A stretch of DNA of 64,000 nt from Lepidodermella squamata (lineage: Eukaryota > Animalia > Gastrotricha): NCBI GenBank assembly GCA_047495785.1, contig JBLDXI010000004.1:1302001-1366000 (forward strand). Reading direction: 5' to 3'. Both the position numbers and the translations under genes were made by a program. Below, piece by piece: positions 21,770-58,467 of this stretch (its first letter is position 1; every line of letters begins with the position of its first letter). The notes under the pieces were generated by a model, which saw only the letters and a program-made list of their open reading frames with translations, was not told where the DNA came from and did no database searches.

Positions 21770-23114
21770 ACTTATGCCGATGACGCTGCAAACTGGGCAT
21801 GGGGGCCCCATTATGAGCAATGTGTTTCGCGGCTTCAGTCTCGCTTACGTTCGACAGAAACCTGGTGTGCTAGATGGCGACTTGACCTCAACCCGACAAA
21901 GTGTGAGTGTATTATAATCGGTCATCATGGCGCCTCCTCCCCCTCCGTCCTATTGTCTATTGGTGGCGTGCGAATCCCGCAAGTGAAAGAGGTTAAGTAC
22001 CTCGGAATCACATTGACTTCGAAACTCTCGTGGGAGAGTCATCTTGATCGGCTATCAGCGAAAATCAAACCCCGAGCTGCATGCTTACGCGGCATCGCCG
22101 CACGAAAAGTTGTCCCTAGTGACCTCTGCGTTCGTTTTAGCAAAGTCCTCATCGAAAGTGTCCTTACCTACGGCTCACCAGCCTGGTATTGTCTACCCAA
22201 GTCGTCCGAGCTACGTCTGTTCGGCTTCCAGGCCCACGGCTTGAAAGCTGCATTGGATCTGCCTATCGAGTGCGACCCTTTCGGTGTTGTCGTCGAAGCT
22301 GGCGTGGAAGCAATCAGCGACGTATTTAAGCATCAACTGATGCGGTACGCCATCAGGTGCCTCAACGCAAATAACGGGATGAAGGATTATATATCCTACG
22401 TTGCCAGCTTCCAGCCTGACGCCTTCGGCCTCCGAATGCTGGAGAAGCACTGTCCAGCATGGCACTTGCGTGACTGCATTAGTGCCCCGGCTAAGCCCTG
22501 CCGCCTCATCACCGACATTTTCCCTAAAAACTAATGTGAGCCTGTGGTTTCCTGTATTTCCTTTAGGTGCCCTTGCGATCCTCGCCCTTCTGAGCCCCTC
22601 TCGAGCCAGCCCGATTAATACGTAAGCTTACCGTTTAATAAATTGATCTCTGCCTTGCCTTACAGAGCCCTGAGCCTGAGCCTGAGTCGTCATGAGCCTG
22701 ACCTTGAGCCTTGAGCCTTTCGGAACCTGAGCCTTGTCTGATGAGCTGGAATAGCCCTGCCTGTAAGCCCTTAATTATTGCCGTTAACCACCTTCGATAA
22801 TTTTCAGCCCTACTCAATTTGCGCAACGAGCCCGAACCCTCGATCGACTTTTCTACCTTTCTACAAAAACGCACAAAAAGCCAACAAAAATCGACAAAAA
22901 AAAAAATCGACAAAAAAATACAAAAAAAAAAAAAAAAAAAAAAAATAATAACATAAAACTCGAAACTATGAACTGCCTATGATAATGTTCAATTTATAAA
23001 TGCTACGAGCCCTAGATAGCATGGGGGCAATATATTTTCATGCTCTAATGCCACTCATATGTGCCTATAGCGCCGGCCGGCGGAGGGCCTATATAAATAA
23101 AACTACGACATGCT
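21770..23114 (+). mobile_element. 5'-truncated non-LTR retrotransposon (RT C-terminal half + 3' UTR)
   Basis: The open frame from 21770 reads TYADDAA…WRLDLNPTKC…KYLGITLTSKLSWESHL…LTYGSPAW to a stop at 22534. An A-rich tract lies at ~22896-22945. Confidence 0.9.
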
Positions 23115-23560
23115 AACAGTGCAAAATTCCAGGAAACGATTCGCCGAATAAGCTGATCAACGAGTTTCGGAGGAAAATCTCTGTGCGAAGCGACTGCATT
23201 GGGATTATTTGGCTATGATCCTGACCAGCTTGAAGAACCGATTTGAATCGCGCCAGTTCACGGTAGACGCCAGTTTTTAAGTAAATCACTGCACGGCGCA
23301 TGTCAAATATCCAGAACTGACTATTTTGATTGTTTATAAGCTCATCTCACACACACAGTTTAAGCGTTCAATTAAAATGGTTTTTGTTAAAATGATTTCT
23401 TTGGTTCTAATTTTGCTTAGCTATAGTTTAATCCCTTAATGGAGTCGTCCAGTAATTCAGTGATTCGGATTTCAACAGAAATAAAAAAAAGATCAACCTT
23501 AAACACGTGGACGGGCGGAAACCCATTTTCCATTGAAGCAAAAAATTACCAACCACGTGC
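23115..23560 (+). repeat. 446-bp direct repeat, right copy
   Basis: Appears identical to 21324-21769. Confidence 0.95.
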
Positions 23561-26302: not shown

Positions 26303-28181
26303 ATCAACTATCAAAGCTGCCTGCTCGGAGTAAGTCTCTTCTAATTTACCCGCATTTGATGTCTATTATTTCGTGTTTGAACAGAACGCGGTTTCGTGCA
26401 AAGATTCGTCTAACCGAAGTTCATGCTACGCAGCCTGCCCTCGAGACCTAACTCAGGTGAAACTTTAAAAACTCACGAATAAATGTTTCTATGGGCATGA
26501 TTCTAAAACAGGTTAAACTCTTCTAGGACTCGCTATCTTTTCAGCTGAACCACGGCAAGTGCATCGATGAGATAACGCCCAAGGTGAGTTCGCATTAACT
26601 CGAATTCACAAATGTCGCTAGCTAGTTCAACTGAAATGACATCTTATGGCATATGGCCTAGTTTGAGCCGTGGTCATAAAGTCATTATCCCCTGCTATAT
26701 GCTGCTATATGATCTGCCATAGGGAACCCAAGAATTAGATGGAGGACAGTCGTACTCCATGCTTACCATTAATGTTCACATAGTATCCCCGGCTTTATAA
26801 ATTTCAATGCCTATAAACTGAAAGTATAGGAAAGGGACAAACAATTATGATTCATTTTGCGAGTTTAACTGGAGGAAGAACGGAACGTACGTGTCATGAA
26901 TGAACACTGTATTATCACCTAACTGTATTTCTGTTTTCTTTTTCCGGTGAATTTCCTTAGTAAGATTTACTTCAATTAGGCTAGCGGAAGCTTCACCCTA
27001 GCGAAAGAGTCCAAATATTTTAGCCCGTCATTATACCGTTTCCGGTTTTAAAGAGGGAGAAGGCAGGCACAGATGGAAAATTGATCCTTACCCACTCCCA
27101 CAGTTGAAAATTTTGCTTTTTCCGAAGAATTCATAATCATCTATCGAGCTAACAATCATGCGCCATTCATCTTTTTCAGGAGATGCGAGTTCAGCTAATT
27201 GTAAATCAGCTTGATTTTGGTTTCAAATTTATTTTCAAATTCTATTGTATTCAGCCTATTTTCTTGGACTTTCGAGATGTTCCAGGATTCACAGGCGTAA
27301 ATGATGGTGTAGGTGTAGGAGCTAGGAGCTTTAATTTTGTTGATATGGAAACCGGATTCTTGTTGCACATAAACTTATTCATAGCCACCAGTGGTGGCGT
27401 ATTCGGGGCTGGTAGTTGGCTGGTAGTTAGCTTGGAAATCTTAAAGTCCATATTCCAACCAACAATAAAAAACGAATACATACTTGTTATTAAGAAATAT
27501 CACCTAAACTGAAATAAATTAATTCATATCGCTGTGTCTTGAAGACAATTTTACTAAGAACCATGTAACGCAGACCACCAGTCAATCTCCTCTCTCTCTC
27601 TCTGTAGTGCTTATTTTTGAGATCAAATAAAATCGAGAGAACATAAAATGTTACTTACATGCATATTTTAGCCGGCTGCGTATTTCCGCTGCGTCGACAA
27701 CAGCGATGGAACAGTTCATTGCGTCACGGCGTCGACAGGCTGCAATGCGGCTACTCAGCTTCGAATTCCGGCTAATGTGGTCTATGCGGACGAGAACACT
27801 TGCAAGAGTGCGACCAAGAAGTACACGGCGGTGGCTTATAGGGGTAACAGAGCTGACAGCGCGCCGAAATGCCCCGAAATCAATGCTACGTTGGCGACGA
27901 TTAGATCAGACGCTGAGCTCGCTGCGGCTAAACAAGCGATAACGCTGGCCAAATCTGCTGACCCTGCCTGGATCGCTCTAACTAGGAAAAACGGCGTGTT
28001 TCAATGGGATGATGGTTCGAGTTTCACTTTCGTCGAAACGCAGTGGGCTGATGTTAATGACGGCTGTGTTAAACTCCAGTTTTTCACCACCTCTCTGCAT
28101 GATGTCCCAGCCGATGGTTATTACTATACTTCCGTTGTGTGTGAAGCCTACGCTGCCTCAGTGTTATGCGAGTCGTTTTAG
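26303..28181 (+). pseudogene. Cys-module/C-type lectin gene copy 4 (3' half only)
   Basis: Begins mid exon 7. Exon 9 has TCG>TAG at 26524-26526. Terminal exon 27672-28181 (module + CTLD) is intact. Confidence 0.8.
27200..27460 (-). mobile_element. Degenerate RTE-like LINE fragment in intron
   Basis: Frameshifted ISTKLKLL…IIYACESWNISKVQENRLN, which resembles the RTE RT thumb motif LYGCETW. Confidence 0.55.
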
Positions 28182-28797: not shown

Positions 28798-30549
28798 GGC
28801 GAAGGGCCGGTTGGTGAGTAGATTGTGATGCAGCTAATGGAGCCATACTTGGATCAGGGTCACTGGCTTTATACTGATAATTGGTATACGGCGATGCGTC
28901 TGGCCGAAACGCTTCTTAACCGGCAAACACATCTCACTGGCACGATAAAAGCTAAGCGCGTCGGCAATCCCGAGTCAGTTATCCAGTCGGATGTCAAGAA
29001 AGGTAATTTTTAATAATTAAATACTTCGGGGAATTTAATTTTAAACTTTATAGGTGAACTTAAATGTCAGCAAAACGCCAACGGCGTAAGCGTCATGAAG
29101 TATAAGGACAAACGCATTGTCCACATGCTGAGCACTTGCCACTCGCCTACGTTGAAGGCAACAGGGAAGAAATGCCGGGACGGTACCGACCAAATGAAGC
29201 CATCGTGCATCATCGCCTACAACTCGGCAAAATGTGGCATTGACAAATCTGATCAAATGAGGTCGTACAATTCGCCACTTCGCAAAACGAAGCATTGGAC
29301 TCGCCGGTTGATGATGGAACTAACTTTGAATACAAGCGTAGTAAATGCCTGGATCATTTTTAACGAGGTAATATTTTTTATTTCGTTTTCCTCGTTTTTT
29401 ATTATTGTTTTGGTCAAGGTCATGGCGCAATCGAAACCGGGATTCAAAATACCGTTACGCCGATTTCGAGAGGAAATTTTGATGGAGCTTTTCAAAATTA
29501 AGCCTTTCGTTGAAGATTTTCCTGATAACGATGACGACTCGTTTGATGTGGACAATTTGGAAACAATACTTAATGACATTGAAACTACGCCAACGCCGAA
29601 ACCGACTCTCCAGCAGCCGCCAACTGCTCCCCGCAAGCAAGTATTCGATTGTGCCTGTACTGGCGCTTGCAATTGCGCTACCTTCTTCGAGTCAACATCG
29701 CCGGAACACTCCGACCAGCCTATCTCGGTCGCGCCAACGACAGGTTTCTCAACACCAGTAGCAATTTCAAACGTTCGCGATTCGGCAGAAGATTCTGCTC
29801 AGTCGGACATGTCTTTCGAGATCACTGATGAGGTTGCGAATCTAGTCGATAACGCAGTCGAAGACGGTCGCAAACGGAAAAGGCGCGCGAATTTCGCAAA
29901 GCCGGCCGAGGTTTCTGAGGGTAAACAGCATTATCTAGGAGAAGATGAGGTGGAAAAACGTACTGATTGCACCCGCTGCAAGAAAGTGGCGAAGAAACGG
30001 CAGCAGACTAAATATTTTTGCGCTACTTGCATCCTGCCTATGTGCTTGAAATGTTTCATCAAACACCAGCGCGAATAACTTTTTTCCTTCCTCTTGTTTT
30101 CTCTTGTCTTGAAAACGGCGTTTTCCGTCTTTTTGGATTTTTTCCTATCATAGGGCATTTCGTCTAAAAATAAACCGACTTATGATTATTACACTTTGAA
30201 ACATGGCGCATTTTATAGTGCCAAAATAAAAAATTTGGTTTGTTTCCAAAATCGATAATCGATAATCGATAATCGAAAATCAGTGATTTCTTCGGGAAGG
30301 AAAGAGTATTAAGTGATTTTGACTTCAGATTTGGGTTCTACGGGTGTTACTTGGTCTTGGTGAAGCACCAACGGATTTTTTAGAAGCACGGGTCTCGTGC
30401 AAAAAAATCGCAAAAAAGCAACACCCCCGCATACTCACATATGAGTATACGGCGATATCCTGCTAATTTGAGGCTACTCATATGTGAGTATATGGCTATA
30501 TTCTGCCAATTCGAGAATACTCACCTATGAGTATATGGCCGTTAAAGTG
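28798..30549 (+). mobile_element. 5'-truncated piggyBac (PGBD4-like) transposon with introns
   Basis: Motifs LYTDNWYT…GTIK, YNSAKCGIDKSDQ, and a C-terminal Cys-rich domain CTRC…TKYFCATCILPMCLKCFIKH (stop 30078). The right end is …GGCCGTTAAAGTG|TTAA with three TACTCANATATGAGTA-like subterminal palindromes. An in-frame TAG lies upstream at ~28820. Confidence 0.9.
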
Positions 30550-33715: not shown

Positions 33716-34258
33716 TATGCCGTTTTGTTGGGTGAGAGCGACCCATGCAGAAAGAATCTGCCAACCTGCTGGAGCTCTTGCCCAGCTGCGACTAAGCTGC
33801 GACCGTGGAAAAGTCTATATACAACACGGAAATTCGCGAGATGTTTTTGGCAGACTGTGAGACGCCGAACGATACAAACACGGCAAGTTGAGCAGTTTAG
33901 CAAGTTGAGTTATACGTATAATGTGGCGTATCCGGCTTCTACCAATTTTAATGTCACATAATTCGAAAAAATCCTGAGAGCTGACTTGATCTCTGAAAAT
34001 GATCTCAGTGCACTCAGGCACGCGATTGATGCGATTACGCAATCACACTTCACTAAGTGTGGGCCGACTTGAAATAAAACACCGACAAGCAAAAACGCGT
34101 TATTTTATTGAAGGCAATACACAGTAAAAAGCGTGCCTCAATCCACTTTTTGCGCTTAAATACGGCTTCGCCATTCACATTTTCATTCACTCAAATTTTC
34201 TCTACAAATTTCGAACTTTTTTAGCGAATTAAACTTTGGCTACGTTCCGGGCGATAAA

Positions 34259-37200
34259 ATGGCTGCTTATCTCTTTGCTATGCTGCTGGCCCTAATGTTA
34301 TCTTCAAGCGATGTTGCTTTCGGTAAGGAGAAGAACTGGGTTCGCTGCTTCTCGCAGTTCAGCAACCGATTCACCAGCTGTGTGCCAGCTGCCGATGGCT
34401 GTAATCCACTCACCGAATATCAGGTTTTTCTACTCAATGTTATCTTCGAAGAAAACGATTGATTAAAATGTTTCTCATCAATAGTTGGGCTCAATTTTTC
34501 GAACAACGGGTGAATGCAACACTGGGGTATGTCAACTTTTCTGCTAAGTCTTTTTTTAATATTGCCATGTTTTTTCTCAATAGAATGCCAGGATGTGCTA
34601 CAAATACGAGGCTCTTACTCCGTTCTGCGTACCTGGCAACGTCGGCTGTAACAACCCGGGTGATATGAATGTAAGCCTCATTCCATTTTGTGAAGTCTCT
34701 AAATCAAAATAATATTTTTCTGTTTTTTCTCATCTTTGAGGTAATATGATTTTTGTATTTCAGACGTTCTGGTTTAACGATCAGACTGCGGCGCTGAGCT
34801 TGAAATTCAACCTCAACGAATGTGAGAAAAAGATAGCTGCATTCGAGGTAAGATTTCCGGAAACTTGACCGTCACGGAATATTTTTCACGTTTGTTTTAT
34901 TCCAGACTTCGAAATTCAGGCGCTGTACGTCGAACAACGTCATCAAGACTTGCGTTCCGGATCCGTTTTCTTGCCCCAACAACTGGGTGCGTCATTTGGG
35001 CCGTCATTGGTGTCGTATTTTTTATTCTCGTCTTCGTTTCGCCTACAGGTTACTGAATCAACTGTGTATCCGAATCTTGCGTCTTGCACCAATGGAACAG
35101 GTTTGTGGGTTTGATGTACTTATTTGTGAAAAAATATGTTAAACAAATCGGGCAGTTATACGTGGGGGTAATTATTGGAGGTAGGAATTTCTAAGAAATT
35201 ACAAATGTTTAGATTACAAAAATTTATAAGTTTTAGCCAGTGAGGTTTGCGGATTACCAATGAAGGCATTGCACCGAAAAGGATCCTTTAGCTTGGACTA
35301 TTGTGTGCTAGTAATTTTTCAAATCAGAAACGGAATTTCCTGTTATCTCTCCGAGGCCTCTCGAGCTGGTTTCTTGACATTTTCACATTTCCCCTTGCTT
35401 GAAAAATTGTTGAAGGTAGGGGTTAATTTAGTTATAGGGTGTTTAATTTTGGACGCCTCGCTAGCTCAGTTGGAAAGGCACAGACATTTCGCTCTCGTCA
35501 AGATACTGTTTCAAGAATATATAAAATTGAAATTATTTTCGACCGGCATAGAGAATGTAGTACTACGTTCTCTATGTCGACCGGGAATTAGGGAGTCCCA
35601 AACAGGGAGTTTTGTTATTTTATTTATTCAATTTATTTCTTTAACCAGGGACCTTCTTGATTCGATAATAGCCAATCATTGTCCCGCACTAGGAAAAAAA
35701 CTAGGTTTATTAGCTGATTTTTAGCTCGGAGCAAAAACTGAGACGTCAATTGTCAATTTTCGCATGCTGATTAGAGGGACATATGAGGGTTTATTAGCCT
35801 ATCCCAGCCCTGACCCGAGCTAATTAGCTTGTCTTTCATTGTGAGACTAAATAAAGCAGTTGTCAGACAATGAAAATCTAGCTTATTAGCTAGCAAAGGC
35901 TATTAAAACCCTCCTATGTCCCTCTAATCAGCTGTGTTTTCGCATGTAAATTGACGTCTCAGTTTTGGCTCCGAGCTAAAAATCAGCTAAAAAAAACTTG
36001 TTTTTTTCCTAGTGCGTATTTCGTGTTCTATTCCAATATTTCAATTCCCCTAAAATGAAGAAGACATTTTTGCCTCCAAATATTTCTATCGGTTTATAAA
36101 ATTCATAAAAGATTCATCGTGTCGTTTTTCTGCGGAAATGAATTGAAATCGAAAGCTGATGGATCGAAAATCCACGTTTTGCGGTGGATCTTTGATGAAC
36201 CATTTGGACTACACAGAAAGCCAGTGTTCAAATGGTTAATCATAGATCCACCGTAAAACGTGGATTCTTCAGCTTTCTATTTCCCTCCCAGGACAATTTT
36301 GAGCTTTGTCCAATTTTGAACAGTCTGACTTTTTCAAGTCTTGCATTGATTGAGGTTTTATGTTTTCGTGTTGTTCAGTCACGGTCCCTGTGAGCGAGAA
36401 GCCGCACATCCGCTGTTTCGACTCGACAACTGGCAAATTCAACGCCTGCCGACCACAAAGCACTGGCTGCTCGGCTAACAATGAAACTCAGCGATATTCG
36501 ACTAATGTGTTCATCAACTATCAAAGCTGCCTGCTCGGAGTAAGTCTCTTCTCATTTACCCGCATTTGATGTCTATAATTTCATTTTTGAACAGAACGCG
36601 GTTTCGTGCAAAGATTCGTCTAACCGAAGTTCATGCTACGCCGCCTGCCCTCGAGACCTAACTCAGGTGAAACTTTAAAAACTCACGAATAAATGTTTCT
36701 ATGGGCATGATTCTAAAACAGGTTAAACTCTTCTCGGACTCGCAATCTTTTCAGCTGAACCACGGCAAGTGCATCGATGAGATAACGCCCAAGGTGAGTT
36801 CGCATTAACTCTGAATCCCGAATGTCGCTAGCTAGTCGCAAGTTCAACTGAAATTATATTTTATGGCATACGGCCTAGTTTGAGCTTTTGGTTTGATGGT
36901 ATAGCAATAAGGCAATCAGTTAAGCTTCATCGGCTTCAATCGGACAATCGATGCAAGAAGAGCCGTGTTCCAGCATGCTTAACGTGGATGTTCATATAGC
37001 TTTTAAATTTTCAATTCCCAAAAACTGTAAGATCTGTAAAAAGAATGGGATAGTCCCCTGGTACATTTCAATATTTTCAATCAATTTTTAGAAGTTATTT
37101 ATTTTTTGATTAATTGAAAATCAACAACAACAAAAAATATGATTCATTTTGTGGGTCTAACGGGAGGGAAAGAGGGGCGTGGCGTGAGGGGCGTCACCAG

Positions 37201-37788
37201 GCTTTATTACTATCACTTGAAACTTGGACAAAATCGAGATGACAAAAAATGTTACCTACTGTCTCCTGTCAATTTTAGCCGGCTGGGTATTTCCGCTGCG
37301 TCGACAACAGCGATGGCGCTGTTCACTGCGTCACGGCGTCGGCAGGCTGCAATGCGGCAACCCAGCTTCGAATTCCGGCTAATGTGGTCTATCCGGACGA
37401 GAACACTTGCAAGAATGCGACCAAAAAGTACACGGTGGTGGCTAATATTGGTTACAGAGCTGACAGCATGGCTAAATGCGTCGAAGTCAATGCTACGTTG
37501 GCGACGATTAGATCAGACGCTGAGCTCGCTGCGGCTAAACAAGCGCTGACGGCGGCGAGGGCGGGTGACGCTTGGATTGCTCTCAATCAGCAAAATTTAG
37601 GCGAATACAGATGGGATGATGGATCTAGTTTCACTTACGTCGCATCGCAGTGGAGAGAGGGTTCCGGCAACTGTGCTGCAATCCTATATTATCGTGCGCC
37701 TTCGGGGGCAGTCCCACCCGAAGGTTATTACTATAAAATCTTTTCTTGCCAAGTCAAATTAACCGGTGTCTTATGCGAGTCGTTTTAG
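34259..37788 (+). CDS. Secreted protein: signal peptide + six 4-Cys modules + C-terminal C-type lectin domain (copy 5, intact, ~440 aa, 10 exons)
   Basis: All exons splice in frame (exon 1 34259-34423, terminal exon 37279-37788). CTLD signature C…LATIRS…E…WIAL…WDDGS…C…C…LCE. Confidence 0.85.
35687..36014. mobile_element. CMC (CACTA/Mirage-like) MITE
   Basis: Long TIRs beginning CACTAGGAAAAAAA, 2-bp TSD CG. Absent from the paralogous intron in copy 2. Confidence 0.8.
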
Positions 37789-37975
37789 TGGTACACTTTT
37801 CTTCCGAACAACGCCTTGTGAGATTGTCGTAAGAAGTCGAAGTAAATTAATACTTTTCGGGGAGATTACATTCTTTTGACACGTGACAAGTAGATTGATT
37901 TTCATCAATGGCCAAGATCGACGAGCTACTAAAACTTTAAACTGTTAAACTGTTCGAATGAGAAGGCGTTTTGAA

Positions 37976-40248: not shown

Positions 40249-40700
40249 CTTTAAATTATTCTATTTTTTTCAATTATATTCCATATAAATATTATTTTTA
40301 TAATAAAATGCAGAGGAATCCCCTGAAACTTAATGTGTATCACGCGTAATTGCATCCAATAAATCGATCACCGATTATCGTTTTGAAAAATCGAAAATCG
40401 GTCTCAGGAAAGCAGCATCACCAAGCTTTCTATTGCTATCTATACAGATTTTGTTATCGGAATATCTTTTAGCGGAACCAAATTTATGGTGAGCGGGACC
40501 TAATTTGCTTTTTGCATAACCAAAGTCGAAATATGCCAAAATTCATTTTTTGAATATTTCTACGAAATTTAGGCTAAGGATGAATTTTGAACTGAACACT
40601 TCGTCTTATAGAGAATGTTGCGCTGAATTCACTGGTGAATTTTCTAGAATTATTGTGACCAATCTTGACCTGCAAGAAATGTCAAAAAACCTATTTCAGG

Positions 40701-42420
40701 GAGTAATATCAAATCATCGGAACATTAAATACTTTTATCGTGCTAGTTTTGTCTTAAACCATCGGAACCATCGGAATATTTATTTTACCCATTGAAACCA
40801 ATTAATTCATCGGAATAACACATTTATTCACCGGAAAAACACATTTTCTCATCGGAAACACAGTGATACGTTATTCTACGTTGCGGCTGTTGCCACGGCC
40901 TCGACGACTTGAGGATTCGTCAACCGAAATAGATGTAGCCACAAGTCCGCGACTGCGGCCACGCCTCGGCTCAATACTAGCTACAACAGTGGCCGGTTCA
41001 TTAGATTGAGAAGAAGCAGGTTCCTCCGACTGAACTCGAGCAATAGCAGCACCGCCCCTGCCCCGCTTGCCACGAGTAGCTACAACAGCTACTGGTTGAA
41101 CGGGAGCCACAGCTGAGCCACGTCCGCGGCCACCACGGGTTACAGCAACACCCGAAGTCGGCTGAACAGGAGCTACAACAGCACCACGGCCACCCCGGCC
41201 TCCACGGCTTGGAGCTGGTGCCAACTGAGCAGCAGCAACTGAGGCACCTCGACCCCGACCACGCCCGGTACAACGAGCTCTAGAGCGGCCACCCCGCCCA
41301 CGACTAGAAGAGCCACGGCCACGGTTAACACCGCCTGCTTGATCAACTGGCTCGGCTAAAGCAAGAGCTGGACCATGTCGAGGGGGTCGACCCGGGTTAC
41401 CTCTCAGAACAAGAGGTATCGACTGAAGAGTGTCAGGAATCTGCTTCAGCTCCAGCTCATGAGCCAAGGCGATGGCGTGAATGCAGGGAATCTTTTTTGA
41501 CCCTACCCGACATGTACAGGTGATTGTGGCGCCGTTGCTGGTAGTCAAACAACAGAAATCAAGAGAGCACTCGAACTGCGCCAAACTTGCCCAATTCAAC
41601 ACCTGTTTCAAATTTGAAACCTGGCGTTCCGTAATGCCGGTGGAGGCCAGTTGTCGAGTAATGAACTTGGGGCCGTAGTTGATATGGTCGGCCACGTACT
41701 GCCGAATTTCGTCAGTTATACGCGCCTTACCGGGAGGATGTTTGTGCTCGCCGCCGCAAGAGAAAACTGCCATATCGCCAGGTGACCAGGTCAATGTACC
41801 CTTTCTCGGACAATCTTTGGCGTCAGATTTCTTCCTGCAACATGTATAGTAACAGGTAATCTTATGCTTGGATCGCTTGGTGGAGTCGATCCAAACGTCA
41901 CCCTTATACCGGACCCTGATGTAGTCTTTGACCTTTTCGAAGGACCAACCAGGTGGCAGAGTTTCGAAGGTGTCGAACTCGAATGGCTTCTCCTGTACAA
42001 CAAAGTCCTGGTCGTCTGGCACGATGTCAGGGTCGTCATCTTCGTCGTAAGTAGGCTCATCACGGGAAATTTCTTCATAATGGTCTTCTTGTTCATCAAA
42101 TACAGCCTCATCGTCAGAAGCATAAAACTGTTGGAGAAACTCCATAATTGAAAAAGCGAGGAAAAATCGAGGAATGATTCTAATAGGGTTTTCAATTTTT
42201 AAGGTGGAAAAATAACACGTGTTCCGATGAAATAATTCGCGTGTTCCGATGAAATAATACGCGTGTTCCGATGAAATAATACGCGTGTTCCGAAAGATAA
42301 TGATTCTTTCATATTCCGACGGTTTAAGATAGCTTTTCATGAAATAATGCATTTCCGATGGTTTAAGATGAAAGTGGCACGATAAAAGTATTTAATGTTC
42401 CGATGAAAAGATGTGGACCC
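40701..42420 (-). mobile_element. Internally deleted MULE, itself inserted in an older GGAACCAAATTT-family element
   Basis: TIRs rich in CATCGGAA repeats, 8-bp TSD ATTTCAGG (40693-40700 and 42421-42428). Confidence 0.8.
40871..42145 (-). CDS. MULE-derived 424-aa protein: acidic N-terminus, WRKY/FLYWCH-like zinc finger, SWIM finger, RGG-rich tail; no DDE core
   Basis: YYTCCRKKSDAKDCPRKG…GEHKH, then CTCRVGSKKIPCIHAIA, then RGNPGRPPR and many RGRG/RGG repeats, all in one uninterrupted ORF from MEFLQQF. Confidence 0.7.
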   Translation of the reverse strand: MEFLQQFYASDDEAVFDEQEDHYEEISRDEPTYDEDDDPDIVPDDQDFVVQEKPFEFDTFETLPPGWSFEKVKDYIRVRYKGDVWIDSTKRSKHKITCYYTCCRKKSDAKDCPRKGTLTWSPGDMAVFSCGGEHKHPPGKARITDEIRQYVADHINYGPKFITRQLASTGITERQVSNLKQVLNWASLAQFECSLDFCCLTTSNGATITCTCRVGSKKIPCIHAIALAHELELKQIPDTLQSIPLVLRGNPGRPPRHGPALALAEPVDQAGGVNRGRGSSSRGRGGRSRARCTGRGRGRGASVAAAQLAPAPSRGGRGGRGAVVAPVQPTSGVAVTRGGRGRGSAVAPVQPVAVVATRGKRGRGGAAIARVQSEEPASSQSNEPATVVASIEPRRGRSRGLVATSISVDESSSRRGRGNSRNVE

Positions 42421-42662
42421 ATTTCAGGCTACTAGAAAATTCCAAAATTTGGTTCCGCTAACGTAAATTTGGTTCCGCTGACAGGAGGACCCTTTTGTTA
42501 TATCGAAAATATCGACAATAATATCTCTACACTTGGTCATAACCAATTTTTAAATGCTGAAAAATTGTACGTGAAACGTGAATTACTCTCATTGAAGAGT
42601 TGACAGGCGATTTTATAGCTTCGACGAGGCCCACGTTTTAATTGATAACTAACAGAGATAAC

Positions 42663-46295: not shown

Positions 46296-49200
46296 ATGAT
46301 TAGAGTAGCCGTGCTAATTTGTGCGGTATTTATTACTGGCTCGTATGCTCCGCCTCCAACTCCGCTATTCGTAATTTCGTGGTTTTAATTTAATTAAGTT
46401 TTATTTTCAATTATTCCAGGATGCTCCAACTAAAGCTGTTTTGAAACAAATCAATGATCACCTGAGTGATGCTCATGGTTTAGCTAAGGTGAGTCGAAAT
46501 CATTGAATTTAAAAAAAAATCTTGAAATTTCGAATTTTTAAAAATTTAAAAAATTCCATATAATTTCAAAAGAATTCGTAAAAATTAAAAAAAAAGTTAA
46601 AAAATTTCAACAATGGCATTTTCATGTAATTTTCAATTTTCAAAATAGAAGACGTAAATCGGTTTGAATGGGAATTTATAGAGAATTAAATCGAACAAAT
46701 ATCATAAAATCATAAAATTCAATAAGGCTTGAAATTATAATTTTTTCAATTTTCATGCCATCAAAATTGTCGTTCTACTTCAAGTTGACGAATAATTTTC
46801 ACCTCTGTTTTTCGATTGCAGAATGCTGATTTTGCGTCGACGCAAGTTATCGATTTTACCGCCAATCAAATGGTGCCGATTTTCAGCCAGCAACAGGCCG
46901 CTATGATTTACAACTACCTGCTGAACCCGAACGGTTTCACAGCGCCGGCTGACAGTGTGGTCCAAAAATGGGACAGTCCCATCTTCTACAAATTAGACGC
47001 TAGCGTGCCAGGTAGAAAATTCGCTGTAAAAAATTCCATGAACAATTCATTTTCATTTTGAAATATTTGAAATTGAATTTTTGAAATTTTATCCGATTTA
47101 AATTTGTATTTTTCTTTAATATAGCCAGCCCGGACGGTGCTAAAATTGCCAATATTTTGACTGCTTTCGCTGATGCGACGGGTGTTGCGTTTCAAGAATG
47201 GCAAGGGGCGCCCAGCGGTAACGGCATCATCATCGAAAAATCAGACAGGTATGTATAAGCTTGTTTCGCGCGGTTTTAATGAATATTCAAGCGTGAATTT
47301 TTGCTGCCAGTGATTACGCGTTTTACGGCAAAATAGCGACCGCCGAGCCGCAGAAAATCTCCTACAGCGACGTGAAAAATGTCCTGCTCGGCCTTCTCAT
47401 CACTTTCGGCTTTGTGAGTTTCAAAAACTCTTACGAAATATTCTCGAAATATTTTTTTAATTTTACAAAAATTTAAAATAAATAGGATAATATTATTTGA
47501 ATTATGCCATTTGACAACCGAAACAAATCGGGAGAAACGGGTGAAAAACCGAAAATTACCGAGCCTACTACCATCAAATTTCTCGGGTTCTCTCAAGCAA
47601 AAACTTTGGTTTAATGATAAGAGATTCAATCAAAATAACGCAGATCCCAAGACAATTTTTTTATTCGATATAAATTCAAAAATTTGTTTTTGAAAATATC
47701 GAATTTAGAAATTTAGAAATTTCATTTTTTTCAAAATTTTATCTCGCTGATGAAATTTTAATTTTTTTTATACAGCCCCCTGAACATACCCGAATCGATC
47801 GCGATTACTCTATCACCGTTAATTGGGCCGCCATTGCCTGGTGAGTGATTGAACAATTTGAAATCTCATTTCAATTTTAATTCAATTTTCTAAATTTTTC
47901 AGGGATTATCGATTTTTATTCGCAATTATTCCGTGGCGCGATACGCGAGCTTCGGTGCCGTTTGATTTCGCTTCCGCCTCGTTGTTCAACCCGCATTCGT
48001 TTTCGAACGACATTTTCCTGCGCGCTTTTCTGCCGAAAGATATGCGCGATCTGGCGACAATTGCCTCGAACAAGTACGAACTGTCGCTCGAGGACAAGAA
48101 ACGGCTGTACATCCTGCAATGGGGTGAGTAGCCCAAACCAATACAGATGATATTATTCGAACAATTTAATACTTGGTTATTCCAAGTTCAGAATTCCTAT
48201 AATTCTCCGAAAAACCGGAATACTTTCGTGAATTATATGCTTACATTTTTGAGTAATTGAAAAAAATTCCACAGAGAAAAGCTAATTTTTCAGCGAATTT
48301 CTTCACCTTGGAAATTGGTCGAATTTTATAGCGGAAAATCAATTTATTTATCAGCTGAATCTAAACTTTTTTTTCTAATTTTACATTGCCCAAAATTGTT
48401 AAAAAATAATATAATAAAAGAGGAAAGTAAAGTTCCAAATTTCGATAAATGTGAGCGGCTTTAACCATTAATTTTGTTAATGCAAAATCCAGACCAAAAT
48501 CAGAAGAGAAAGGAAAAATTTTCAGGTGAAACCCAAATTAACCTTGGTCTCATTAAAATTAGAGGTTCCCGAGAAATTTGCGGGATGTTCTTCTGATCTT
48601 GAAATTTCCATGGAAACGTTTTATGCCTTTCTCTGATTTCACCAATGTTTTCGAAAAAAATTCTGTGAAAACTCAGGAAAATGGTCCGGTATTTTTCGGT
48701 TTGTTCCCAATTTTTCCATATCAACAGCCGCTTTTACGCTAGAACGTAAGTATGAACTGTAATTAGAATGTGCAGCATTAATTAAGACAGAAAATTGAGA
48801 TTTTATGCAGGTGAGAGAAATTTCGATTTTTTATGGGCTTTTTTTCGAAACAGTCAAAGTTGTTATATGATTGATCGGCAGAATTTCCAATAAATCCCCT
48901 GCAAATTCAGCATAAAATTCTGTACAAGACGCATTCATCACCATAAAATTCATTCTGTGCCTGAATTTCGTAGAATTATCCGAAAAGCGACCTTTCGCTT
49001 ACCTAAAATTAGGTTCCGCAACAGGAAAATTTGGTTCCATTTGGTAATATATTTTTTTTAATATTTGTTTATTTATTGATAAAAATTAACCAAAAATTAC
49101 AAATCAATCGAATAATTTATTTTTGGGAATAATAATGTTTTCATTAATCGGTTATTGATTTGTACAAAATTAATTTATAGGCTCATTGTGCTCATCGACC

Positions 49201-52144
49201 ACGCCGTCATGCTTGAACGGCGGCTTCCCCGTGCCAGCCGCCAACGCCCCCGGCAGCCCAACCTGCAGCCGATGCGTCTGCCCCAGCGGCCTATCAGGCG
49301 CCGATTGTTCAACGATCGGCGCCGCCCCATCGCCGTGCAACCAAAACCTCGTCGATATCCCGCCTTGCAAACGCGTCTCCTTCGCCTTGCCGACGTACTC
49401 GAGCGGCGACGCGTGCACCCGGCGCTACCGAACCGCCGGCAATGGCTTCATCCTCGGCTTCGACGGGCGCCCAGGCCTGAGGTGCGGCGCCCTGAATAAC
49501 GACCTGGCTTGCGAGGACTACATCGAGGTGAGAGCAGTGGCGGCGGATGGCAAGCTCGGGCCGGCGAGGCGGTTTTGCGCGTGCGGCGTCACGGCTGGCC
49601 GCGTTGCGACCATCGACACGAATGAGGTCATCGTCACGTTCCAGAGCCGAGCGGCGACCCCGGGAACGCGCGGCTTCAAGCTCAACATCTACGCCACTTG
49701 CCAGGTAAAAATTTTGAAACAAAAATCAGAGAATTGATGCTGATTTATTTTTTAATTAATTTTTCTATTTGGATGAAAATTGAAAAAATTCTGAGAAAAT
49801 TTGAATTAATCTCACCCTCAACTTTGAATTTTTAAATTTTTAAAATTTACAAAATTGGAATTTTGATTTCTGAAAAAATTAATGAACTAAAAATTTCGTT
49901 TGGTTTGAAGCTCCGAAAATTCTGAACTTCGAATCGAACCTTGGGGGATTAAACATTCCCGACAGTTTGCCTAGTAGTAATTTCCAAAAAATTAATTATA
50001 AAATATTAGGGATTTTACTCAATATTTTAAAAATTGGTACTGATTTTAGAATCGGAATTTTCGAACTCTAAATTTGAATGAGCCTGTGTAGAAATGCCTG
50101 GAAAATTATTTTCTGAAATTTTGAAATATAGCTTTGGACCTAACCTCTGGACCTAACCTTTAATAAAATAGTTCATGGGGTGAATTATCAATCGCTTGTC
50201 TCAACGATGCGATTGTTCCATTGTCTGAAAATCCTAAAAATGTTCATAATATTTTCAAATTTTCGAATTCGGAAAAATGAAATTTTGAATTTGCAGGAAA
50301 ACAAGAAAAATTAACTGTCTTTTATAAAATTTAAATTTTTTTTTAATTTTCAATTTCCGAGAAATGGATGTTTTCCCGTGAATTCCTTATATAATTATAT
50401 TTTTTTATGGGAATTATTCTTCTAAATATGAATTTCGGCTAAAGAATATTTCACGCTCGTGTAGGGTGTTTCGGCTACGCACTACTCGAACCGGTGCCGC
50501 ATCACGCCATCCGGCTACGACTACATCGGCATTAAAAGTGTCGCTGAGAACAACAAGACGTGCATGCCGTGGCCGCCGGGCATCATCGACGACGAGCTCA
50601 ACTACCCGATGGGCGATCGCCAGGCGTCGAAACACTACTGCCGCAACCCGTACCGCCAGCAGTCGGAGCCCTTCTGCTACACGGCGGCGTCTTACATCGA
50701 AACAGCCCAGTGCAATCCGATCCCGCATTGCCGTAAGCTAAACTCCTCATTGATATCGCCCAAAAGAAATGGGAATATCTTTTAGCGGAACCAAATTTGC
50801 TGTATCGGAACCAAATATGCTGTAGCGGAACCAAATTGGCTTTTTGCGGAACCAAACTCTAAATATGCCAAGAGTCATTTTTTGAATATTTCTAAGAATT
50901 ACCTTTTGGCTGAGAAACAAACATTTTCAAAGATTTTTCAATTGAAAGTGAAATTTTCAGAAAAATTGAGAACATGTCAAAAAAACAAGGAAATTGAAAT
51001 AAAATTGAAAAATCAACACATTTCAGAAATCAAAAATTTAAGTGCAATTTATTTTACACTTTTTCAAAATTTCAAAATGTAAAAAGTTAAAAAGTTAAAA
51101 ATTAAAAAAATGAAAACAAAATTGCGAAAATTCCCATCTAAATCGCTGGTGATGATAACTGTGTCACAAGGCAACCTGATTGTTAAATCAGGCAGTCCCC
51201 ATTTGTAAAACATGTTTATCTCCCTTTACAATTTTATTTCAATTTAGAACAGAAGTTTTTGTATTTGAAAATGCTGAAATTTTCTCAAAGTGAAATTTTG
51301 ATCAGTTCCCAATCCTAAATTTATGAAATATCGGGAATCAAGCGATTTCCAGCTCCTGGACAACCGTTGCTAAGGTGTTTGCGTCAATAATTTATTGTTG
51401 ATAACCCGCAAGAAATACGAATGATTTTTCAGACTCGAGCGTTCGATGCAACCGGCGCAACGGCGACTTCAAAGCCTGTCGTGAATACAAGCCGAACGAG
51501 CCGAATTTCGGCTGCCACCCGGACGAATCCACGGTATGAAAAAAGGCACCATGAATGCGTTTAAATTTCCAAATCTTATCGTTAAACGCAGTTGACGCCA
51601 CTTCGCGTATTCCCGGACCCAGATTCGTGCAATATTAACGTAATTTCAGGCCTCTTTTGATATAGCACTGATGTCAACAATTTGGTTTAGGGTGTGAAAA
51701 TGTGCTACGACTTTGACAGCTCGACGATCAAGTGCGTTGAAACGTTCCGCCAATGCCCTGCCCCTACCAGAAAGGTTCGCGCCCAAATTCCAGCCTTCAG
51801 TTGAATCTTCTCATTTTTGTGAAACTGAAATCAGATCGGCCACATCAGCTTGTACAAGCGATTCGAGAAGAACATGCGTTTCTGTAAGATGGGCAAGGTA
51901 AGATTCCTGATCTTTTGGCACATTGGTGATTCGACCCGATGTGTAGGTTCCGCACTTCCGCTGTGTCACCTATGCTGATCCGAATTCTTTCAAAGCCTGC
52001 CGACCTGTTAGCGTTGGATGCCGCAAAAACGTCGAGGTAAGCAGCAACTGTGACCATTTGCACAAATATACTCCCGCAATTATTTTCTAGTATTCGGTTG
52101 GCGAGTACGAAGATCTAACCAGTTGCATTCCAGAGTGGCTATAA
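46296..52144 (+). CDS. Secreted astacin-like pseudoprotease: signal/pro, dead M12A domain, EGF, CUB-like, kringle, three 4-Cys modules (15 exons)
   Basis: In-frame splicing from MIRVAVLICAVF… to …SCIPEWL*. Astacin context W..PIFY, EHTRIDRD, PFDF.S, LS..D. EGF CLNGGF…CSRCVCPSGLSGADC. CUB-like C.DYIEV…RFC…GFKL. Kringle YIGIKS…CMPW…HYCRNP…PFCYT. Confidence 0.8.
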
Positions 52145-53384
52145 AGCGACAGCTTCGACTCGAGCCATTGATTTCTCTCTCATGCGATTCTTGAAATTCA
52201 ACTATTTATTTTTCTCGCTTTTTCTGGCGGCAAGGCTCATGCTTTGAAAATTTAATAATCGAATATATTTATTTGAGTAAATTGGAAAATGAATCATTAA
52301 ATAAATTGGTCGTAATTCGTAATCTTGCTGAATATCAAGCTAAATATTCAGCTAGATAACGAAAAAGCTAACAGCGAACCAAGTCTTATTTTGGTCTTTT
52401 TGATTCAATGAAAGAACCAACAGCCCTCGTGGCATTATCGACGAGCACAGGAAATATAATGGCGTTATATTTGAATCTTGGTTCACTCAGAAAATGAATG
52501 GCTGATCAGTTAGTAACCAGAATATTTTACATATTTCCAGGATTTTCATGAAAAATGAAAAAATGAAACAATCGAGCAGTGATCACCTCGTCATAGCAGC
52601 GAGTATACCATTATTCAAAAGTGAATTTTTCAGTTTATCATAGAAACTGTTGTATTACACAGGGATGGATGGTGCCCATGATGCAAACTTGAGGCCGGTA
52701 GAAGAATTTCTATTAAATTGGACATAGGAGACGGATGATTTGAAATTCGAAAATGAGATTGATGGACCTTCATTCTTTGATAATTTATTCCAAATTGAGA
52801 TTCACAGAAATTCATTAATTTCGTAAAATATCGAAACTTTACTTCAGTTTTCCGGGTCGACTTGAAAAAGACGAGCAGTGATCATCTGATACCAATTGGT
52901 TCATTTAGATTTACCCTTAGAAGGTCAAAATTCAAGATATCAATTCATTCTGCCAACTGCTGAAGCCCTCTAGCTCATCAGAAACCTTTCACTATTTTTA
53001 TGATTTCATGATGATACACGTTCAAATAAGACCTTTGATCTATGAATCTTATTGTTTTGACAATATTCACAGATTGTTTTCTGGAGTTCAGCCGTTAATA
53101 AAATATCATTTTCATGACACGCATTCGTAGTAACATTTCGAAGCACAACAAAGAACAAACGAGGATAAATCGCGAAGGGCCCTCTATCAGAGCGGCCTTC
53201 TTCTACCACAGATTCGGTCGACGGTGGCGGAGATAAGCAGATCTGATTTCAAGGCAATCAGCGATTCATAACATCCATAACATGTCCAATGATGAAAATT
53301 GAAGATATGCAGGCTGAGCAAACGATTTGCGTACATTTTCTTCTGCTCCACATCGCCGATCCCGAACGAAAATTCATACATTAT

Positions 53385-53620: not shown

Positions 53621-54349
53621 TTAATGATCGCTAAAACGCGGCGTTCAAGCTCGAAGTGCCTTGGACTATAAATTACAAGCCAAGTGAATACAATTTAACT
53701 ATAAAGACCACCGACCGACAGAAAGTGCAGTGATAGGAATGAGAGAATTTGTGTTTCAATAATTCGAAAAAATTTCAACAAAAATTGGCTCGACCATTGA
53801 TCGCTATAATGCGGCGTTCAAGCTCGAAGTGCCTTGGACCGCAAATTTCACCCCCCCCCCCCCCTTAAGCTCGGCCGGGCGAACAACAAAATGAGAATTT
53901 ATCCCACTGTTTCGTTAATTTTGAGAGGTTGTTTGGAGGCGTGTTTTAGTGAAAAATCTTCAATATTAGTCATTTTGAAAAAGACAGGAAACAAAAGTTA
54001 GCCATCCCTAGCAGCTCCAGGATCTAACGCTCGCTGAGTTGAAGACAATTTTTGTCGCAAATCGGGTCACCTTCCGAGATAGCATTTGTTTGAACGAGCG
54101 AATTAGGACGAGACAATGTGTTGCCAATTATTGTATAGCTGAAACGCGCTGGTTGAATAATCACTCGTTTATCTCGGAAATGCCTGTTTGATAATTGGGC
54201 AATCTGGACAATGTTATTGTCCAACTCGAAATTAGGACGAAAAATGTTAGTTTCAGGAAAATCGATGTCGAAACACGCAGTATCCCTAGTTTTCATTTCA
54301 TTTTGAAGCATTATTTCGAGTTTATTCCAAGTTGAATTCGCGCATTAAA

Positions 54350-57300
54350 ATGACCGGTTCTTATTTTGTTCTTCTGGCACTTACGCTGGCGTCGATCGAC
54401 GTGGCTTGGGGCGCGCAGCCGTTGAACTGGGTTCGCTGCTTCTCGCAGTTCAGCAACCGATTCACCAACTGCGTACCAGCCGCCGATGGCTGTAATCCTC
54501 TCACCGATTATCAGGTTTTTCTTCTCAATTTTAGTTTTCTTCGAAGAGCTGAGTAATTGAAATATTTCTCTATCGACAGCTGGGCTCAAGCTTACGAACA
54601 ACCGGCAGTTGCAACACCGGGGTCTGTTAAGATTACCAGTAAATCTATTTTCAATTTTGGTCTGTTTTGGTCATCTATATAGAATGCCAGGATGTGCTAC
54701 AAATACGTGGCTCTTACCCCGTTTTGCGTACCTGGTAACGTTGGTTGCAACAACCCTGGTGATATGAATGTAAGCCCCATCACCCAATTATTTGGAATTA
54801 AGCATCAAACTAAAATTATTACTGTTGTTGTGATATATTGTTTCGAATATTCGCCTTAGATGTTCTGGTTCGACAATCAGAATGCGACGCTGAGCCTGAA
54901 ATACAATCTCAACGAATGCGAGAAAAAGAAAGCTGCATTCGAGGTGATGCATTCAGGAAACTTTGCCCCTCTGCTGATTATGCGTTACACCTGTATCGTT
55001 ACAGACTTCGAAATTCAGGCGCTGCACATCGAACAACGTCACCATGACTTGTGTCCCAGACCCGTACTCCTGCCCCAACAACTGGGTGGGCGATTTTAAA
55101 AGGTTGATGTGTTCCTGTTTGACGCTGATTCTTGTTTTCTAGGCCACTGAATCGACTTTGTATTTAAATCTTGCGGCATGTACCAATGGAGCAGGTTCGT
55201 AAAGACCAGACTCGATTTTCGAAAACTGGAAACAGAATAATTCATCCAGTACAATTGCTATTATTTTCCGTTTGTCATCTCAGTCACAGTTCCAGTCAGC
55301 GAAAAGCCGCACATTCGGTGCTTCGATTCTGCCACCAAAAGGTTCAACGACTGCCGACCGCAAAGCTCGGGATGTTTCGCTAGCAATGAAACTCAGCAAT
55401 TCTCGACCAAAGTTTACATCAACCGTGCAGCTTGCATGCTAGGAGTAATTATTTAGTCATTTTCGTTACAGCAATAAATGCGCTTGTTTTGACAGAATGC
55501 TGTTTCATGCAAGGATTCATCCAATCGAACGTCTTGCTACGCGATTTGTCCTCAAGATCAATCTCAGGTAACCTCTCAATGAAAATCACATTTTTTCTGG
55601 TATCTACTGTTTTTCATCAACAGGTTAAGCTGTTCTCGGACTTGGGCAACTTCCAGTTGAATCACAACAAATGTATCACGGACATAACCCCGGTGGTGAG
55701 TTCTCATCGAAGCTTTCAGCCCTATGGTGTGTGCAGCTATCGTTTCACTTCCTTATAACTTATTCTTGATTGCCCGATTTGACTGCGATTACTCTTGTCC
55801 AGAAGTGGAAATAACAGGGGACCTTCAGGAAGCGCCCACCCTCTAAACGAACTCGGGGTTCCAGATCGGAGGAAAGTATATTTCTCCATGGCTAGCCAAT
55901 AGAGAGTTCCCCTATTGATTCGTCAATTGAAATGCGTAAACTGGGCTAATTAGAGGGACACAGGCTGGGTTATAAGCCTATCCTAGATAATTAGCTATTT
56001 TCATTTTCCCTAATTCCAATTCTCGGAATGTTTCAATTGCTCGAAGCTATGTCAACGTCGATGTGAATAAGGCTGAAATCTGAAATTTTGGAAGTATTTC
56101 CCCCATTACTAAGAATAACATTTTTCTTAGGAACAACTATAATCCGATCGTAGACTTTTATTCTTCGCGCGGCAAAGCACAATTGACCGAAAATAAGTGA
56201 TGCGGGGTTTGGCGCATTTTCCGTCTTTTCCAGCCATATTCCCAGCTGATGGCTGAAGGTTGCTTTGAAAGGGAAGATTCTGGGATTTCTGGATGTTTTA
56301 AGTCGGTTTTTCTTGAGGATTTTCAAACTTCAGATTCCTAGGAGGCTCCCATCCACCTCAAGAGACGGCAGACCCAGAAGTGACGGCGAAAAGGCTTATC
56401 GCTCCATAGGTTGACGTGGAAACACTGGCTTCATTCCATTCACATTTTGTTGAGCATATCGCAAGATTCCTCACCTCAGATCAGTGCTTTGAATTTGATT
56501 TGATTTGATTTGATTCAGACCCTGTTTTCACTTATTTAGATTTGAAATGATTGATTTACGTGGGGAAGCATTTTGATTTGATTGATTTTGATTTAACTTT
56601 GGAAATGCAATAAAAAAACTTGACATGTACTGTGAAAATGAAATTTGTCTTCATTTTTGCAAACATTTGCTCTAGAGAGGGATGGTAGTTCCTAATTTGT
56701 GCCATTTTATCAATTGCCTGAATTTTCATAGCCCCCAACTTGGTGAAAACCCTGATTTTTCCCGATTTATTGTGATTCATCGCTGTCGATGATTTGATTT
56801 GATTGATTTAGTCCCGTAGAAGTGGGACAATGATTGATTTTGATTGATTTGAGGAGTTCCATGATTTAAGCTGTAACTCATATGAAATCAAATTCAAAGA
56901 GCTCAGCCTCAGATTCAAGATCTGCACAAATTCTACCTTAACCTTAACTTTGAAGCCGATTTTCTCAGCAACCCTGATAGCTATCGACCTCTGTTTGATA
57001 TCGTTCGACTCCTCGTTCATCGATCTTGAAACGGCATCAAAATTTCACGACGATGTCTAAAATATCGCCAAACCCCGCTTTTCACTTATTCCCGGTCAAT
57101 TTATCTATATAACATAACCACAACATAAGTTGTATAACATACCGTATTTCTCGAAAATATACACCGGGGTATATTTGTGATTGAACCAACACATTTTTAG
57201 GGTTGTAATCGGGGTGGGGGATATTTTCGAGGTGCGGTATATTTATGATCCATCAACAATTTTCAGAAATGTGGTAAATACTGCTAACAATAATTTCGTT

Positions 57301-58244
57301 TTACTGGACCAAAGCGTGAAAAAGAAGGATTACTTAAGCAGTTCTGGAGGTTTTATCAGTTAGTTGTAGTTCTATACGATCGGAACATACGATATCAGCC
57401 ATGAAATCAGTAACATAGAAGACATTTTTCGAAAAGAATTGAACGTGAAATTCAAAATGGACCTCCCCAACTTCGCCCTTCGTGCCTCCATTGAGTTATC
57501 ACTGGCAATCTTATGCCCAGCCCAAGCTAAGCAACAGGCTGATGGGGTGCGTATTTCGTTTTTTTAGTAAAATGATACGGCGCTTTGGTTTTTTTAATAA
57601 CATGGGGTAGAATTTCGAGGTGCGGTATATTTATGATCAAACGGTAAGTTTTATAGGGTTGTATTCGGGGTGGGGAATATTTTCGAGGTGCGGTATATTT
57701 TCGAGAAATACGGTAGGTTGATAATTGATAAGAAATTTCTTGATAGACCACTTACCATCGATGTCTGCAAACTGCCGACAGTTCAGTATCCTGCCGACTG
57801 AGCTCGAGCGGCTGTGATGCCAACACGGAGAGACGATTTCCAGCAAATGTTACGTTCAGCGGCGAATCGCAGTGTCAAAACGCTAAAAGGACTCTGTTTG
57901 TGTATAGTAGCGCCGGCATTAATTTCAATCATTCAGCTGCAGCCGCAAAGTGCTTGGAACTGGGCGGCGCCTTGGCAACTGTTAAAATGGCTACAGACCT
58001 GTCCCGCATGATCAGCATGTTACCTAACGACCCCAGTGTCGTTGCCTGGGTGGGTCTTGCGCCAGAGTCCGGCGTCCTTAAATGGTCGGACGGTTCGGCT
58101 GTCACATACCAATCAAATCTGTTTTATATGCCGTTGAATAATGATAAATGTGGCGTGATTTATATCGGCATTCGTTTGATGATTTTCTATGCTTGCAACA
58201 CTATTAATGTCCCTTACGCAATATGCGAAACCTATGTTGAATGA
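54350..58244 (+). CDS. Secreted Cys-module/C-type lectin protein copy 6 (intact, divergent lectin)
   Basis: Signal peptide MTGSYFVLLALTLASIDVAWG, 9 module exons in frame, and terminal exon 57747-58244 TTYHRCLQ…KCLELGGALATVK…AWVGL…WSDGS…CETYVE*. Confidence 0.8.
57142..57713. mobile_element. Tc2/pogo-type MITE
   Basis: TA|CCGTATTTCTCGAAAATATA … TATATTTTCGAGAAATACGG|TA with repeated TTTCGAGGTGCGGTATAT. Confidence 0.85.
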
Positions 58245-58467
58245 GTGTTAAGGCATTGGGGGTGCCGTGAACTTTTGAAATGGCTGTTAAATAATTGATG
58301 ATACGTTAAGAGTTGAGAGCTGTAGCAGCATAATAAAAATAGAATGAATCGGGCTTCCCCAATTTCTTTTTCAGCGTTTTCGAAAACAAGATTTGATTTA
58401 TGAAATGGTGCAACAAATGCTCAGTTCACGCAACTCCGATTATTGAAGAATGACGAAATCATTTTTT

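Follow-up and report, generated by a model that had tools for sequence, protein, structure and literature searches.

A predicted pseudo-astacin with EGF, CUB, kringle and four-cysteine modules in the gastrotrich Lepidodermella squamata

The arrangement astacin-EGF-CUB is typical of nematode NAS proteins, whose usual continuation is TSP1 and not a kringle. The full order signal peptide, prosegment, astacin, EGF and CUB is found in NAS subgroups III and V (DPY-31/NAS-35), as the subgroups are defined in C. elegans (PMC2824743), and in the dpy-31-like proteins of annelids and molluscs. All of these are active proteases in which the CUB domain is followed by TSP1 or by nothing. Here we describe a gene that shares this order, located in a stretch of 64,000 nucleotides of the gastrotrich Lepidodermella squamata (GenBank assembly GCA_047495785.1, contig JBLDXI010000004.1, positions 1,302,001 to 1,366,000; this whole stretch is called the window, and all positions are given within it). 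The gene differs from the NAS and dpy-31-like genes in that the active site of its astacin-like domain is dead and in that its CUB domain is followed by a kringle and by three copies of a four-cysteine (4-Cys) module. The encoded product is most likely a non-catalytic, secreted binding protein.

Metzincins that have lost their catalytic residues are already known. ADAM11, ADAM22, ADAM23 and unc-71 lack the zinc ligands and the general base, as does the protein described here, and act via protein-protein contacts; pseudo-metallopeptidases generally act by protein-protein interaction (PMC11266112). The ADAM pseudopeptidases belong to family M12B, are membrane-anchored and typically keep the Met-turn, whereas in the present case the Met-turn is lost too. 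The 2024 review of inactive metallopeptidases lists no member of the astacin family (PMC11266112).

A single gene of 15 exons on the + strand, at 46296-52144, was predicted from the sequence. Its exons and terminal features are:

46296-46370, 46420-46488, 46822-47011, 47125-47248, 47311-47413, 47776-47840, 47903-48123, 49181-49704 (+): exons 1 to 8
50465-50732, 51433-51533, 51592-51639, 51691-51774, 51835-51897, 51947-52036, 52091-52144 (+): exons 9 to 15
46296..46370 (+): exon 1, with the start codon (first ATG of the open frame) and a signal peptide assigned by inspection, hydrophobic core at about residues 4-13
52296..52305 (+): overlapping ATTAAA/AATAAA, candidate polyadenylation signal about 150 nucleotides (nt) past the stop, from the sequence

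All 14 introns have a GT donor and an AG acceptor, with a pyrimidine-rich tract before each AG. The phases agree, and the coding sequence of 2079 nt encodes 692 amino acids (aa) and a TAA stop, with no internal stop. The first-pass annotation had stated that all 15 exons remain in frame, and this holds. The G+C content is 56% in the exons (68% at third codon positions, GC3), 29% in the introns and 41% over the window. The Kyte-Doolittle maximum lies at residues 1-19 and no second strongly hydrophobic segment is found anywhere in the protein. Since the N-terminus is the sole strongly hydrophobic segment, we infer by inspection that the product is secreted and soluble. The protein contains 32 cysteines, distributed over the EGF module (6), the CUB domain (8), the kringle (6) and the tail (12), with none in the astacin-like domain; by cysteine count, the mature protein has no unpaired Cys.

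The N-terminal half of the gene encodes the prosegment-like region and the astacin-like domain, in which the two key motifs of the active site could be located:

46420..46968 (+): prosegment-like region, exon 2 and start of exon 3; MAFFT alignment with ten active astacins, weak here
46969..48123 (+): astacin-like (M12A) pseudo-catalytic domain, residues about 98-283, exons 3-7; Pfam, local hidden Markov model (HMM) and blastp
47387..47805 (+): dead zinc-binding motif over the exon 5/6 junction (47387-47413 plus 47776-47805; intron 47414-47775); alignments to active astacins
47973..47987 (+): dead Met-turn, residues 233-237, SASLF versus SxMHY (Met to Ser235, Tyr to Phe237); alignments

Homology to the astacin family (MEROPS M12A, PF01400) holds over the whole catalytic domain. 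Pfam was searched exon by exon, and the Astacin profile (cut-off 22.5 bits) gave sub-threshold matches of 12.9 bits for exon 6 (profile positions 95-112) and 12.8 bits for exon 7 (positions 130-182), both in the correct order and register. A PDB sequence search with exon 7 gave no useful match. Against a local HMM built from 53 active astacin catalytic domains, residues 81-290 scored 52.8 bits, compared to a mean of -5.5 and a maximum of 1.2 bits for 1000 shuffles of the same residues. Moreover, residues 89-492 scored 103.8 bits against an astacin-EGF-CUB profile, and blastp aligned the protein to an active astacin open reading frame (ORF) from a metagenome contig (L003, see below) with 67.8 bits and 27% identity over 280 residues.

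The catalytic residues are absent from this domain. The zinc ligands H1, H2 and H3 are replaced by L179, I183 and P189, and the catalytic general-base Glu by G180, so that residues 179-189 read L-G-x-x-I-x-x-G-x-x-P. The motif glycine (G186), the family-specific Glu (E190) and the RxDRD sequence (R193-I-D-R-D197) are kept. No cysteine is present in residues 97-283, versus the two conserved disulfides (four Cys) of active astacins: the first position is occupied by G131 and the second by D154, the third falls within a 4-residue gap, and the fourth is ambiguously aligned and contains no Cys. These results, obtained with a profile of active astacins, bear out the earlier claims that all three His ligands and the catalytic Glu are lost, that the Met-turn reads SASLF and that the cysteines of the domain are absent. 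The motif had also been said to lie in exact register. This is the case relative to the downstream GF...E..R.DRD anchor, but active astacins have 4 more residues in the segment preceding the active-site helix. The aligners differ on where this gap is placed, and every placement leaves no His or Glu available.

An alternative exon restoring HExxH was considered, since the first-pass annotation had named transcripts with such an exon among the findings that would overturn its reading. A six-frame scan of 44-54 kb for HExxH found nothing except one off-frame string broken by a stop, and tblastn with four active astacins over the window found no astacin-like segment beyond the modelled exons. Neither search thus revealed such an exon. 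With no zinc site, no general base and no Met-turn, the domain is predicted to be unable to act as a metalloprotease. The framework that defines the astacin fold, and the cleft, appear to be retained.

The prosegment is less clear. In the weak alignment of this region, the aspartate-switch position tentatively reads N-Q-M (Q64), and no basic activation site seems to be present before W98. In four annelid and metagenome astacins (P0008, P0009, P0010 and P0015), we observed D/E-G-C at the aspartate-switch position, where nematode astacins have EGD-I/V; in these four proteins a Cys thus replaces the expected zinc-blocking Asp.

Three extracellular domains follow the astacin-like domain:

49183..49314 (+): EGF-like module, six Cys, first part of exon 8; Cys columns match active astacin-EGF-CUB proteins
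49330..49701 (+): CUB (PF00431), 8-Cys variant; phmmer, AlphaFold2 model, Foldseek and language-model look-alikes
50465..50732 (+): kringle (PF00051), exon 9, six Cys; Pfam, 41.1 bits versus a cut-off of 34.3

Pfam matched neither EGF nor CUB on exon 8, and both were identified by homology and fold searches. The EGF module has the pattern C-x-C-P-x-G-x-x-G-x-x-C, and its Cys and Gly columns are near-invariant with those of 63 astacin EGF-CUB regions. A phmmer search with exon 8 against 1.8 billion representatives returned five proteins, none above 45% identity. Two of them (P0003 and P0005) are active astacins whose EGF-CUB region aligned to exon 8 with E = 1e-4, and Pfam calls CUB in both exactly where exon 8 aligns; the remaining three are CUB-kringle fragments. 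With exon 8 as the seed, a local jackhmmer search converged, recovering EGF-CUB regions from about 70 astacins. The AlphaFold2 model calculated on the resulting alignment had a predicted local distance difference test score (pLDDT) of 87.4, and the top Foldseek matches of this model in the PDB were all CUB domains (probability 1.0, TM score by target at most 0.70), including those of TSG-6, neuropilin, C1r/C1s, MASP and PCPE. Language-model look-alikes of exon 8 were nematode EGF/CUB/astacin clusters. A PDB sequence search with exon 8 gave no useful match, nor did a word search, which covers only proteins of 96-304 aa. The kringle was recognized directly by Pfam, and its PDB sequence matches are the kringles of HGF, plasminogen and ROR1/2 (best E = 2.6e-15). 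The positions NPD-x-D and PWC of the kringle read NPYRQ and PFC, and a canonical lysine pocket is therefore unlikely.

The tail (residues 548-692) consists of three copies of the 4-Cys module:

51433..51639 (+): 4-Cys module 1, exons 10 and 11; module HMM and alignment
51691..51897 (+): 4-Cys module 2, exons 12 and 13; module HMM and alignment
51947..52144 (+): 4-Cys module 3, exons 14 and 15, with the TAA stop; module HMM and alignment

Each copy is encoded by two exons separated by a phase-0 intron a few residues past the third Cys. The domain order proposed earlier, EGF-CUB-kringle followed by three 4-Cys modules, is thus borne out by Pfam for the kringle, by homology and fold searches for EGF and CUB, and by repeats that are real. 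The neighbouring genes, which terminate in C-type lectin domains, each contain several copies of the same module, and the initial part of module 3 shares 48% identity with the final stalk module of these lectins. Some of the lectin copies are encoded by a single exon, and others are apparently broken shortly past the third Cys, like the copies of the tail.

The 4-Cys module is an orphan, in that it matched no known family or fold. Pfam assigned no family to any copy, the single-exon lectin copies included. A model of a lectin-gene copy (pLDDT 84.3) forms a β-hairpin and a short helix; Foldseek found no match to it in the PDB (best E 2.7), and comparison with the ESM Atlas gave nothing convincing. 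A resemblance to MbtH-like proteins was rejected, the best VIA Z of 4.9 being within noise. A language-model search with the module gave a score of 0.75. The present gene offers a handle on this orphan module, which it has in common with the adjacent lectins.

The three CUB-kringle fragments found with exon 8 trace to metagenome and Logan contigs that carry eukaryotic genes with short introns. The domain order of these genes is astacin-EGF-CUB (8 Cys)-kringle, with three genes in tandem on L001 and one each on L003 and L004; L002 (Logan SRR23086389) is a fragment with EGF, CUB and kringle only. The L. squamata gene has the same domain order as L001, L003 and L004 up to the kringle and shares the 8-Cys CUB variant with all four contigs. 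Over CUB-kringle, its identity to L001-L004 is 35-36%; over the astacin domain, identity is about 25-27%. In contrast to its dead site, the zinc motif of L001, L003 and L004 is still HE..H..G..HEH.RPDRD; SxMHY and the astacin cysteines are additionally present in the L003 gene and in at least two of the L001 genes. The 4-Cys tail is absent from L001-L004, and the L003 gene apparently continues into a second kringle. Of the named proteins, those nearest to the L003 enzyme are the 'dpy-31-like' proteins of annelids and molluscs and the NAS astacins of nematodes. Among the 120 matches listed, the only other protein with both an astacin domain and a kringle was P0125, which is active. Kringle and C-type lectin are both among the domains reported in astacin architectures, in a survey that retained only sequences with an intact motif (PMC9848320).

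Since active relatives possess the same EGF-CUB-kringle body, the architecture is older than the catalytic loss: by sequence comparison, the astacin-EGF-CUB-kringle body predates this loss, and both the loss and the 4-Cys tail are derived. The architecture had been called unusual. Up to the kringle it is not, as it exists with intact sites on L001, L003 and L004; what sets this gene apart is the 4-Cys tail and the loss of catalysis. Comparison with the active relatives may reveal which parts of the astacin fold survive the loss of catalysis.

Two further observations were made on these contigs. The L001 scaffold (7.7 kb, ENA ERZ23486764) carries its three tandem astacin-EGF-CUB-kringle genes at L001:79-7523; genes 2 and 3 have intact zinc motifs, and gene 1, cut at the contig end, keeps its Met-turn. 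Adjoining the active astacin-kringle gene of L003 is a separate ORF of 424 aa (L003:4155-5429), which encodes a signal peptide, two kringles and a low-complexity region rich in Gln and Thr.

The absence of the tail from all metagenome relatives raises the question of whether exons 1-9 and 10-15 belong together. The model could have fused two transcription units, with a dead astacin-EGF-CUB-kringle gene ending soon after exon 9 and exons 10-15 representing a separate or remnant lectin-like gene. Read-through past exon 9 does stop after 19 codons, the intron between exons 9 and 10 is 700 nt long and contains a repeat insertion, and the same modules make up the stalk of the adjacent lectin genes. 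However, the end of exon 9 and the start of exon 10 are both in phase 1, and a stop 28 nt upstream blocks the frame of exon 10, which lacks its own ATG. Moreover, the exon 9/10 intron contains no signal-peptide-like ORF, and no C-type lectin remnant was found between exon 15 and the next lectin gene. Exon 15 has its own stop, followed by the polyadenylation signal. We consider a fusion of two units unlikely, and a single gene extending to exon 15 is preferred.

A second alternative is that the single gene is a young, unexpressed pseudogene, that is, a copy of a dead-astacin member whose function was lost recently and whose frame is so far free of stops and frameshifts. GC3 varies along the gene, from 0.45 in the signal peptide and prosegment and 0.60 in the astacin-like part to 0.85 in the CUB domain and 0.83 in the kringle, and then 0.66 in the 4-Cys tail. 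The lower values in the 5′ half are what a pseudogene could display; they weigh against a protein maintained over its whole length, and may reflect weaker constraint in this part. On the other side, 2079 nt remain open over 15 exons, all 28 splice dinucleotides are intact, the 32 cysteines are kept and a polyadenylation signal is present. In a simulation of neutral decay with intron-like composition, the probability of acquiring no stop was 0.02 with 5% substitutions per site and 0.001 with 10%; at 5% divergence, substitutions alone would thus be 98% likely to close the frame, a figure that limits only the recency of the loss. A pseudogene of this kind is rather improbable.

The divergence of the astacin-like domain is much larger than the values simulated: it amounts to about 75% relative to the nearest active relatives, and a dozen residues that define the domain are gone. 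As the frame is open despite this divergence, most of the divergence would have arisen while the frame was under selection. In addition, the astacin cysteines were lost as complete pairs while 32 of the 32 cysteines of the other domains were retained, as expected for a protein that still folds in the secretory pathway. These data argue, indirectly, for a maintained pseudoprotease rather than a pseudogene. The first-pass annotation had described the gene in these terms: the dead astacin homologue and the open 15-exon frame stand as described, and for the word 'maintained' the support is indirect only.

Finally, that the domain remains an enzyme by means of an unconventional metal site or mechanism, for instance one using E190 and the adjacent His191, which persist beside the former third-ligand position, is extremely improbable, as the three His, the general-base Glu, the Met-turn and the Tyr are all lost together, the aligned active-site helix contains no further His cluster, and no metzincin is known to function without zinc His, general base, Met-turn and Tyr (PMC9848320).

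The preferred reading is that of a pseudoprotease acting as a binding protein. The gene would descend from a lineage of active astacin-EGF-CUB-kringle proteases and, as one intact gene, would produce a secreted, soluble, disulfide-rich protein. Its astacin domain would have kept the framework and lost the zinc site, the general base, the Met-turn and the disulfides. The loss of these catalytic elements leaves no metalloprotease action, hence binding as the most likely role. The former protease domain, the CUB domain, the kringle devoid of the canonical lysine-pocket acids and the three 4-Cys modules may all provide interaction surfaces in the extracellular space. This would most likely be a further instance of an enzyme repurposed for binding, pseudoproteases being already an established class. 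As a pseudo-astacin it is a clean case, with the ligands, the general base, the Met-turn and both disulfides gone and the rest of a 692-aa, 15-exon, 32-cysteine protein preserved.

As for binding partners, the gene lies among other genes that carry the 4-Cys module, at the following positions in the window:

11700-14800: 4-Cys-module gene family
17400-20500: 4-Cys-module gene family
27777-28181: 4-Cys-module gene family
34100-37800: 4-Cys-module gene family
54200-58250: 4-Cys-module gene family
63520-60670 (-): 4-Cys-module gene family

Five of these genes have a C-type lectin domain. Four of the five domains exceed the Pfam Lectin_C cut-off (32-43 bits); the copy at 20050 is below this threshold. 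Identity among the lectin heads is 30-61%. On the minus strand, the locus at 63520-60670 shows 4-Cys modules only, and at least one module copy looks degraded (17476-17655, last cysteines missing).

The first-pass annotation had suggested a scaffold, decoy or substrate trap for the neighbouring lectin family, a suggestion that the results do not support: the shared 4-Cys module and the adjacency of the genes are the sole link. From this link it is conceivable, as speculation, that the protein has a lectin-associated adaptor role. A working analogy is provided by MAp44 and MAp19, CUB-EGF-containing non-proteolytic partners of collectin-type lectins, and the CUB-EGF structures of MAp44 and MASP are among the fold matches of exon 8. 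The analogy is not one of descent: MAp44 and MAp19 are alternative splice products lacking a serine-protease domain, and the protease parts are not homologous. Extended further, it would make the dead astacin and the surrounding C-type lectins a single secreted recognition system. In such a system the 4-Cys module, present in the lectin stalks and in the tail of the pseudoprotease, would serve for docking or oligomerisation, and the CUB/kringle part would be a non-catalytic adaptor tethered to diversifying lectin heads. We regard a single recognition system as quite doubtful; if it were true, an analogue of lectin/MASP/MAp44-type complexes would have evolved independently in an animal lineage that has hardly been studied.

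The window also contains mobile-element remnants, with a duplicated pair of segments among them:

29095-30078 (+): C-terminus of a piggyBac-type transposase (DDE_Tnp_1_7), mobile-element remnant
40871-42352 (-): 493-aa ORF with a SWIM zinc finger and an Arg/Gly-rich tail, mobile-element remnant
21953-22534 (+): unassigned 193-aa ORF, grouped with the mobile-element remnants
21361-21486 and 23152-23277: duplicated segment pair

Coding remnants were considered in the long introns 7 and 9 of the pseudoprotease gene and rejected, the content of these introns being repeats that are also present on the flanks of the SWIM-ORF element (40.4-42.5 kb). The repeats are short (48904-49038 in intron 7 and 50769-50900 in intron 9). 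They are 72-97% identical to the flanks of this element (40456-40629 and 42446-42484) and to each other, in inverted orientation, and look like small non-autonomous insertions.

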